A stretch of DNA of 63,687 bases, from NCBI GenBank assembly GCA_002269645.1, contig NIVC01004031.1:1-63687 (forward strand), written 5' to 3'. Below, one piece after another: positions 29,654 through 31,582 of this stretch. Position numbers and translations under genes: made by a program. Source of the DNA: Macrostomum lignano (lineage: Eukaryota). The notes below the pieces were generated by a model. The model saw only the letters and a list, made by a program, of their open reading frames with translations, was not told the origin of the DNA and made no database searches. Numbering within the stretch: the first letter of the stretch is position 1; each line of letters starts with the position of its first letter.

Positions 29654-29961
29654 TCACATGTGCTCAGGGTGCTCCCGCAGCTGCTCAATAAAGTCCCGCG
29701 GCTTCATCTGGCCCGAGCAGATAAGGTGCACCGCCACCATCAGGGGGAACCGTTGCAGCTGGCCCTCCTCCTGCAGGGCTCGGTGCACCTCGGCTGCGAT
29801 GAGGGGGCCCTGCAGACGCTGGCCGTCCAGCATCTCCTTCTCCAGCTGGCGCAGCGGCTTGCCGGTGAGGACCATCGCTTCTCCCAGCTTGCGGTTGCGG
29901 CCGCCGTAGCAGGTGGTCACGAGATCGTGCATGCCAAGCGGCCCCGAGCCGTCATGGGTGG
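29654..29961 (-). CDS. GPD1: GPDH exon 5 (terminal)
   Basis: cccgcag|[30 protein letters not shown]...MLDGQRLQGPLIAAEV...RFPLMVAVHLIC...LREHPEHM*; 308 nt. Confidence 0.93.
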
Positions 29962-29984
29962 CTGCGGGTGGGGTGGTAGGCGGG

Positions 29985-30536
29985 TAGATAGGTGGATAGG
30001 TACTTAGGTAGTTGGGTAGGTAAATAGGTAGGTAGGTAGATAGGTAGCCAAGTTTGATAGGTAGCTAGGTAGATAGGTAGGTAGCTAGGTAGAAAGGTAG
30101 GTAGATGGGTAGCTAGGTAGATAGGTAGCTAGGTAGATAGGTAGCTAGGTAGCTAGGTAGATAGGTAGCTAGGTAGATAGGTAGCTAGATAGGTAGCTAG
30201 GTAGAAAGGTAGATAGATAGGTAGCTAGGTAGAAAGGTAGGTAGATGGGTAGCTAGGTAGATAGGTAGCTAGGTAGATAGGTAGCTAGATAGGTAGCTAG
30301 GTAGAAAGGTAGATAGATAGGTAGCTAGGTAGAAAGGTAGATAGATAGGTAGCTAGGTAGAAAGGTAGGTAGATAGGTAGCTAGGTAGCAAGGTAGGTAG
30401 CTAGGTAGATAGGTAGCTAGGTAGATAGGTAGCTAGGTAGATAGGTAGGTAGATAGGTAGATAGGTAGCTAGGTAGATAGGTAGGTAGATAGGTAGATAG
30501 GTAGCTAGGTAGAAAGGTAGGTAGATAGTTGGGTAG
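29985..30536. repeat. Compound TAGG/TAGA/TAGC microsatellite in GPDH intron 4
   Basis: Direct observation. Confidence 0.93.
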
Positions 30537-30809
30537 CTTGTGGCGAGGCAGTGCATCTCAGTGGTTACGGTGCGTGTCTGACCCTCGCGCTAGAGCACCC
30601 TCGTGTTTGATTCCGCGCGGGGCCACATTAACTGAGGGCCTTCATTAAAAAAATAACTTGAGGCTGTCCCGGAGCCTGAGCAGCTCAGCGGAGTGGGCCT
30701 TGCCTGCCTCCTGGCTGCAGGTGGCCTCGCACTTCTGCGACTTACTCAAGGGTCAGTAGCTTGAAAAAGGTGGGCAGTAACAAAAGCAAACGCAAATTTG
30801 CCAACTCAC

Positions 30810-30896
30810 CCGCCCATTTGACATCCTTGGTGTTGTAGCAGGAGGAGATGATGTCCCCGATGCCGCAGCTCTGCATCAGTGTGCGCTTCGTCACGC
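30810..30896 (-). CDS. GPD1: GPDH exon 4 (87-nt symmetrical exon)
   Basis: cgcccag|[29 protein letters not shown]|GTGAGT; homologous to the [16 protein letters not shown] segment; phase 1-1. Confidence 0.8.
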
Positions 30897-30941
30897 CTGG
30901 GCGATAAATGGTTGCGTAACGGCTGGATTGGAGTTGTTGAA

Positions 30942-30942
<1 letters not shown>

Positions 30943-30988
<46 letters not shown>

Positions 30989-31051
30989 TAGACAGACAGA
31001 TAGACAGACAGATAGACAGACAGATAGACAGACAGATAAACAGACAGATAA

Positions 31052-31118
<67 letters not shown>

Positions 31119-31198
31119 CTAAGACAGACAGACAGACAGACAGACAGACACAGACAGACAGACACAAGAGACGCACACAGGCACACACAGACACAGAC
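30943..31198. repeat. (GACA)n microsatellite in GPDH intron 3
   Basis: Direct observation; includes one GACACTAAGACA interruption. Confidence 0.95.
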
Positions 31199-31209
31199 CG
31201 CAGTCTCAC

Positions 31210-31582
31210 CAGCGGAGCCGTAGAACCGCTGCACATATCGCAGTATCTCCATGAAGCCCAGCCGGATCACAGCAGCCTTGGTGTTGTCCCCGAAGCCCAG
31301 AGCGTCGCAGAAGCCGGCCCCGGTGGCCACGATGCTCTTCAGGGCACCGCAGATCTCCACGGAGAATTCGTTCTCAATGATGCTGATCCGGAAGTACGGC
31401 GTCTGAAACAGGCGCTTGAGCTGGGCGGCCCGGGTGGGGTCCCGGCAGCCGAGGGTGGCCTCGCAGTACACCTCCTTGGCGATCTCTGGGGCGAGGTTCG
31501 CGCCCATCAGCACCGCGCACTCCATGCCAAGGTTGCTTCGAATCAGGTCTGTCAGTAGGCTGAGGCCTTTCGGCATTGGCTC
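31210..31582 (-). CDS. GPD1: GPDH exon 3
   Basis: ttcccag|[10 protein letters not shown]...[12 protein letters not shown]...[35 protein letters not shown]...RFYGSA|GTGAGA; 373 nt, phase 0-1. Confidence 0.95.

Follow-up and report, generated by a model that had tools for sequence, protein, structure and literature searches.

The genome of Macrostomum lignano contains a GPDH gene in which the helix bearing the catalytic Asp appears to be encoded twice, once on a small internal exon of 87 nt and once at the start of the terminal exon. The gene lies on the minus strand of contig NIVC01004031.1, of which the whole stretch analysed (positions 1 to 63,687) is referred to here as the window. An initial annotation, made from the sequence alone, considered that the small exon could be either an active-site splice switch or an unusual insertion. 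Here we ask how this arrangement arose and whether the small exon is switched in and out of the enzyme or is a regular part of it.

Gene model and deposited records

Re-splicing of the exons given in the initial annotation reproduced the gene model to the base: five coding exons on the minus strand, an 87-nt exon 4 of phase 1-1, and products of 382 aa with exon 4 and 353 aa without it were all confirmed. The features of the gene, in window coordinates, are:

Exon 1, 34250..34351, minus strand: residues 1-34, with the ATG at 34351 and the GSGNMGS NAD-binding motif
Exon 2, 32856..33134, minus strand: 279 nt, phase 0-0, placed by tblastn of the annotated product
Exon 3, 31210..31582, minus strand: 373 nt, ending in ...FYGSA plus the G of a split codon, with the donor CTG/GTGAGA
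Intron 3, 30897..31209, minus strand: 313 nt, made up mostly of a (TCTG)n microsatellite; the other homeologue has 199 nt
Exon 4, 30810..30896, minus strand: 87 nt, phase 1-1, residues 252-280
Intron 4, 29962..30809, minus strand: 848 nt, about 270 nt of unique sequence and then a (CTACCTAK)n / 28-nt repeat array
Exon 5 (terminal), 29654..29961, minus strand: residues 281-382, with the stop codon TGA at 29654-29656
Downstream copy of the duplicated segment, 29881..29961, minus strand: the first 81 nt of exon 5

The exon junctions are all canonical GT-AG (CTG/GTGAGA, CCCAG/GC, CGG/GTGAGT and CCGCAG/CC). Exon 4 itself is bounded by the acceptor tttatcgcccag/GC and the consensus donor CGG/gtgagt, and the acceptor of intron 4, which follows the repeat array, is pyrimidine-rich. 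With a length that is a multiple of three, and with both copies of the duplicated segment in one phase, exon 4 can be included without a change of frame, and the 353-aa product without it is open throughout.

Repeats fill much of the non-coding part of the gene. Most of intron 2 is occupied by a 32-nt minisatellite (CTGATTCTTCACTGAGCACCGCTGCCCTCCCC, about 37.5 copies, window 31603-32830), and this intron is 1273 nt long in the window copy and 921 nt in the other homeologue, so that the introns of the GPDH gene differ mainly by repeat copy number. Two tRNA-like stretches seen by eye, at about 30560-30660 in intron 4 and at about 36960-37040 (for example GGGGCCGTAGCCCAGCGGTCTAGCGCAGG...GGCTCGATTCC), look like tRNA-derived SINEs. 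ARAGORN made no tRNA call in these stretches, and at the gathering threshold Rfam had no match to them or elsewhere in window 29000-38000.

The 382-aa product is letter for letter the deposited GenBank protein PAA48874.1 (BOX15_Mlig026562g1; UniRef100_A0A267DJR1) of M. lignano Mlig_3_7. The gene is present in four near-identical genomic copies, namely the window copy and Mlig024885g1, g2 and g3 (loci L001, L004 and L005). The latter three are nearly identical to one another. Compared with the window copy they show 22 codon changes, and their repeat-filled introns are shorter; the four contigs represent two sequence types whose synonymous sites differ by about 6%. Exon 4 is intact with the same splice sites in all four copies, and the annotated models include it at all four loci, the sister copies being modelled at 382, 382 and 297 aa. 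The shortest model belongs to L005 (NIVC01004466.1), where small indels at the start of exon 5 cut it to 297 aa; because the rest of this copy is identical to L001 and L004, the indels look like assembly errors and not like the mark of a true pseudogene. The exon-4 sequence is also carried by the further UniProt-held models P0005, P0126, P0141 and P0144.

Origin of exon 4 and complementary loss in the two copies

The nearest relative of the window gene is the canonical M. lignano paralogue BOX15_Mlig030757g1/g2 (P0127, 351 aa; loci L002 and L003). In P0127 the position of an intron coincides exactly with the start of exon 4 and interrupts, in phase 1, the Gly codon that follows FYKDR; everything from that Gly codon to the stop codon lies in a single terminal exon. 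In Schistosoma japonicum GPD1 an intron lies within a residue of the same site and is likewise followed by a single terminal exon. The undivided terminal exon at a shared site in both genes indicates that exon 4 duplicates the opening 29 codons of what was ancestrally the last exon.

Comparisons of the peptides point the same way. The exon-4 peptide aligned with the start of the canonical terminal exon without a gap over 28 residues, which are all of its complete codons, with a BLOSUM62 score of 63 for the paralogue and of 69 for human GPD1; none of 20,000 shuffles reached such a score. Its alignment with the exon-5 copy had p = 1.5e-4. When the product was searched against the PDB with phmmer, human GPD1 aligned in two stretches (GPD1 4-262 on query 3-268, and GPD1 257-349 on query 290-382), so that GPD1 residues 257-262 were covered by both. 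Pfam domain PF07479 also matched the 382-aa form in two stretches and the 353-aa form in a single one. The tandem duplication of the catalytic-Asp helix claimed in the initial annotation is therefore backed by the shuffle test, by the double coverage in phmmer and by the split PF07479. These comparisons show that exon 4 is a tandem duplicate of the ancestral terminal exon's acceptor and its first 29 codons. Two codons are missing from the exon-5 copy, so that the gene has a net gain of 27 residues over canonical GPDHs.

To locate what each copy has kept, we used a MAFFT alignment of 85 sequences, with conservation scored against the 83 other GPDHs. Exon 4 retains T257, S261, C262, G263 and D266 (the T-x-x-x-S-C-G half) and has lost GGRN, as first described. 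The exon-5 copy, also recognised in the initial annotation and confirmed in this alignment, has lost T..F.ESC and two codons, with T-F-x-E-S-C replaced by the Gly/Pro-rich DGSGPL, and retains D293, T297, G301, R302 and N303. Of the residues in the invariant columns of the family, exon 4 thus supplies C262 and G263, and exon 5 supplies D293, T297, G301, R302 and N303; the nearly invariant T257 and S261 both lie in exon 4. Because the exon-5 copy is without the Cys-Gly of the SCG and the preceding Thr and Ser, skipping of exon 4 would remove conserved residues that nothing else supplies. Such complementary decay is the pattern that would be expected if both copies were present together in a functional product.

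We propose that a tandem duplication in an ancestor of this gene took in the 3' end of the last intron and about 29 codons from the start of the single terminal exon. Having kept the ancestral phase-1 acceptor, the upstream copy now ends at a GTGAGT donor and thereby became the 87-nt internal exon, which would be included in the major mRNA. In the protein, a net 27 residues separate the conserved SCG turn from the Asp-Leu-Val-Thr-Thr helix, on which the equivalents of human D260 and T264 lie. The copies then degenerated in complementary ways, the N-terminal half being kept upstream and the C-terminal half downstream. The resulting protein would most likely fold as a normal GPD1 with residues from about 269 to 290 looped out beside the active site.

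The arrangement was regarded as rare when it was first noticed, and our searches bear this out. No insertion was found at the exon 4 site in any of the 83 aligned GPDHs. In an exhaustive HMMER scan of 1.84 billion cluster representatives with a 90-residue query spanning the insertion, the only high-scoring matches in one stretch (125-168 bits) were M. lignano models, and nearly all other GPDH matches were split in two stretches with at most 57 bits. Protein searches with a 223-aa query and with the full-length product returned no insertion-bearing orthologue outside M. lignano in the protein collections covered. A separate search with 90 aa around the insertion gave 17 candidates, all of them short canonical GPDH fragments, and missed the gene's own product, so it is uninformative on orthologues. 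The remark that no GPDH like this had been described also stands, in that a literature search found no description of a GPDH exon duplication. The protein, then, is already deposited (PAA48874.1), and it is the duplication for which we found no published description.

Two other groups of models came up in these searches. The GPDH models P0008, P0040 and P0041 carry near-identical internal repeats, which look like assembly or annotation artefacts. P0216, P0219, P0235 and similar proteins of 600-1900 aa matched query residues from about 28 to 68 (...GSGPLG) several times over, in 4-11 stretches with 25-33% identity; these are probably repeat proteins rich in Cys and Gly that match by composition.

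Exon 4 usage, selection and the active site

The GenBank annotation of M. lignano is a filtered genome-guided transcriptome, for which RNA-seq reads were mapped with STAR and assembled with StringTie and TACO; its inputs also included a mapped de novo transcriptome, and the ORFs were called by TransDecoder (PMC5730564). Because this annotation was built solely from RNA-seq assemblies, the mRNA containing exon 4 is an RNA-derived model and not an ab initio guess. TACO was used with an isoform-frac of 0.75, by which isoforms below 0.75 of the major one were discarded (PMC5730564), and a substantial skipped isoform could therefore exist unseen. The 353-aa skipped product was absent from a 15-billion-protein collection. 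The protein cluster of the window gene has no Logan-derived member (Logan being assemblies of public sequencing runs), while that of the canonical paralogue has one, which suggests that expression of the window gene may be low. A search by gene ID of the full texts and supplements of M. lignano papers found no expression data. The inclusion of exon 4 is probably constitutive or predominant. The proposal of an active-site splice switch is not supported, since the sole recorded products, from three intact copies and one truncated by indels, include exon 4 and the 353-aa form is unrecorded.

Between the window copy and L001 we counted 16 synonymous and 6 non-synonymous changes (dS 0.060, dN 0.0069, dN/dS 0.115), which indicates purifying selection on the gene overall. 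The introns differ by 5-12% between the homeologues, with many indels, and exon 4 differs by one synonymous change and one conservative I264M change. Homeologue conservation of exon 4 compared with that of the unique intron flanks (2/87 versus 24/424 differences) was not significantly different (p = 0.28).

The protein has diverged from its family. Among the 147 columns that are at least 90% conserved in the 83 other GPDHs, 23 are violated, including W13M (in GSGNWG), H94Q, N210S, G221A and T335I, compared with a median of 3 in the other GPDHs; these violations put catalytic competence in doubt. GPD1 has a conserved hydrogen-bond network, Q295-R269-N270-N205-T264-K204-D260-K120 (PMC9119304), of which 7 of the 8 residues are present here (K119, K209, D293, T297, R302, N303 and Q328). 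The eighth is changed: in the GALKS motif of exon 3, K209 corresponds to human K204 and S210 stands in place of N205, in a column that is 100% conserved in the 83 other sequences. Pfam domain PF01210 scored 123.9 bits over residues 5-177, with the nearly invariant Trp of the NAD-binding motif being Met, and PF07479 scored 125.7 bits in the 382-aa form (cut-off 25) and 114.5 bits in the skipped form. The protein may still carry out the NADH-dependent reduction of DHAP.

AlphaFold2, run with the 85-sequence alignment, folded the 382-aa form with a mean pLDDT of 89.5, only residues 269-290 being below 50. Helices are predicted at residues 255-261, 265-273 (block pLDDT about 64) and 292-300 (about 82), and the position given to the insertion is of low confidence and depends on the input alignment. 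The model matched the human GPD1 ternary complex 6E90 with a TM of 0.96 (target-normalised) and an rmsd of 1.6 Å. Helix 292-300, which runs into R302/N303, probably occupies the canonical D260/T264 position. The 353-aa form had a pLDDT of 92.8 overall, with residues 249-261 as coil and a pLDDT of 55 in the block 251-260.

Taken together, these results make it probable that the gene is a transcribed, selected and fast-evolving GPD1 paralogue in which exon 4 is constitutively or predominantly included and adds an extra loop by the catalytic Asp helix. If exon 4 were instead a regulated cassette exon, tissue or cell state would toggle between the 382-aa two-copy form and a 353-aa form with a remodelled pre-helix segment (THDGSGPLG). 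Its length of 87 nt, the phase 1-1, the two open products, the high overall confidence with which AlphaFold2 folds both forms and an isoform filter that could hide a minor isoform are all consistent with such a toggle. However, the inclusion form alone is annotated at the four loci, the 353-aa sequence is missing from the 15-billion-protein collection and exon 4 has strong consensus splice sites. Skipping would also cost the protein two invariant residues (C and G) and two nearly invariant ones (T and S) that are not supplied by the exon-5 copy, would put a low-confidence coil in their place and would lower the Pfam C-domain score from 125.7 to 114.5 bits, and we regard this explanation as unlikely. 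Also unlikely in our estimate is the broader idea of a GPD1 whose active-site helix has been remodelled for changed activity, whether exon 4 is a regulated cassette or is obligatory because two half-degenerate copies complement each other; the change would be an altered substrate or altered kinetics, owing to N205S and to a new loop of 22 residues next to K120/D260, or an on/off form under splice control.

The divergence of the protein could also mean that the duplication broke the active-site helix and left a decaying or catalytically dead paralogue, a pseudoenzyme with a non-catalytic or altered role or one on its way to loss. The 23 of 147 conserved columns violated (N205S, W13M and H94Q among them), Pfam scores of about 125 bits compared with about 150 for the canonical paralogue, and an insertion directly before the Asp that pairs with K120 would agree with this, and we count in its favour that D260G costs human GPD1 6.5 kcal/mol (PMC9119304). 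On the other hand, a dN/dS of 0.115, the retention of 7 of the 8 network residues, a frame that is open in three copies and differs in the fourth by assembly-type indels alone, and transcription of the gene, known from RNA-derived models (PMC5730564), argue against decay, and we consider a dead or dying enzyme doubtful. Far less credible still is that exon 4 is an intronic relic threaded into the models or a mis-assembled duplication. Tandem repeats are dense on the contig, and the unrelated GPDH models P0008, P0040 and P0041 do have obvious artefactual internal repeats; yet those repeats are near-identical, unlike the two highly diverged copies here, the same structure stands on four separate contigs of two sequence types with about 6% synonymous divergence between them, and the models rest on RNA evidence.

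Relatives, comparable gene structures and neighbourhood

Human GPD1/GPD1L (1X0V, 6E8Y-6E90) and the window gene product have both Pfam domains in common, with 48% identity, a TM of 0.96 for the predicted fold, and equivalents of K120, K204, D260, T264, R269, N270 and Q295 present in the M. lignano protein. With the flatworm GPD1 genes the window gene has the position of the last intron in common. It differs from GPD1 by the net 27-residue insertion between the SCG turn and the Asp helix, by Ser at N205, by Met for the Trp of GSGNWG and by the 23 of 147 columns changed.

The canonical paralogue P0127 resembles the window gene in its phase-1 intron before the TFFESCG segment. Unlike the window gene, it has an undivided terminal exon, no insertion and an extra upstream intron at K106; it retains W13, H94, N210 and G221, all of which are changed in the window gene, and it scores higher on both Pfam domains (about 150 versus about 125 bits). 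Identity to the window gene is 55% by BLASTP for P0006, a model in the P0127 cluster, and 63% over the MAFFT columns. In a neighbour-joining tree, 97 of 100 bootstraps placed the window gene together with the canonical paralogues of M. lignano, which indicates a lineage-specific, accelerated duplicate. The UniProt-held model P0143 represents a third GPDH gene type of canonical form, and M. lignano thus has at least three GPD1-family lineages.

Tandem exon duplication has been reviewed for mutually exclusive exons (PMC9013439, PMC9741552). As in those systems, the window gene has adjacent homologous coding segments that stem from local tandem duplication and have their acceptor phase in common. 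It differs in that the downstream copy has no exon of its own and is the first 81 nt of the 308-nt terminal exon; because only the 5' part of that exon was duplicated, the downstream copy cannot be excluded on its own. Both copies are found in all annotated products, giving an internal repeat and not a substitution. With alternatively spliced cassette exons, exon 4 shares the symmetric 1-1 phase by which the frame is kept on skipping. We also considered two other ways in which the gene could form an isoform, and rejected both. In-frame internal acceptors at nt 81 or 84 of exon 5, among them gggag/AAGCG (first base 29880), which would give an isoform like those of mutually exclusive exons, are preceded by purine-rich sequence with no polypyrimidine tract, and there was no evidence of their use. 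Read-through of the exon-4 donor as an alternative end would meet a stop after 25 more codons, without GGRN.

The gene is a clean and datable case in which duplicating part of a terminal exon has yielded a new internal exon and an in-frame insertion beside a catalytic residue, after which the two copies lost conserved residues in a complementary manner. Should the enzyme prove active, a large loop would be tolerated at the SCG/Asp-helix junction of GPD1, which would be useful for dissecting the K120-D260-T264-K204 network; if it is not, the gene would be a young pseudoenzyme under selection. Regardless, we see it as a modest evolutionary curiosity that opens no major question, since the protein is deposited and tandem exon duplication is well known.

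Directly upstream of the GPDH gene are two WSC-domain genes or ORFs, at about 35180-36030 (minus strand) and at 38997-39257 (minus strand), the nearer of which is BOX15_Mlig029383g3 (147 aa). All four loci have a WSC gene upstream of GPDH, and L001 has two. The UniProt-held model P0126 fuses WSC and GPDH in one protein, which possibly reflects a shared transcriptional unit. Between the two WSC genes, the ORF at 37713-38171 (plus strand) encodes an integrase core (Pfam rve, 47 bits, E = 3e-12) and is probably a retrotransposon fragment. The contig is largely tandem repeat. A minisatellite at window 15319-21286 has a 16-nt unit in 373 copies (6 kb) with a strong skew of A over T, another at window 40458-43921 has a 24-nt unit in 144 copies and gives rise, on either strand, to spurious open frames longer than 1000 aa, and more than 25 other arrays are present. 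A tRNA-Met (CAT) gene is predicted at 44264-44337 (plus strand).
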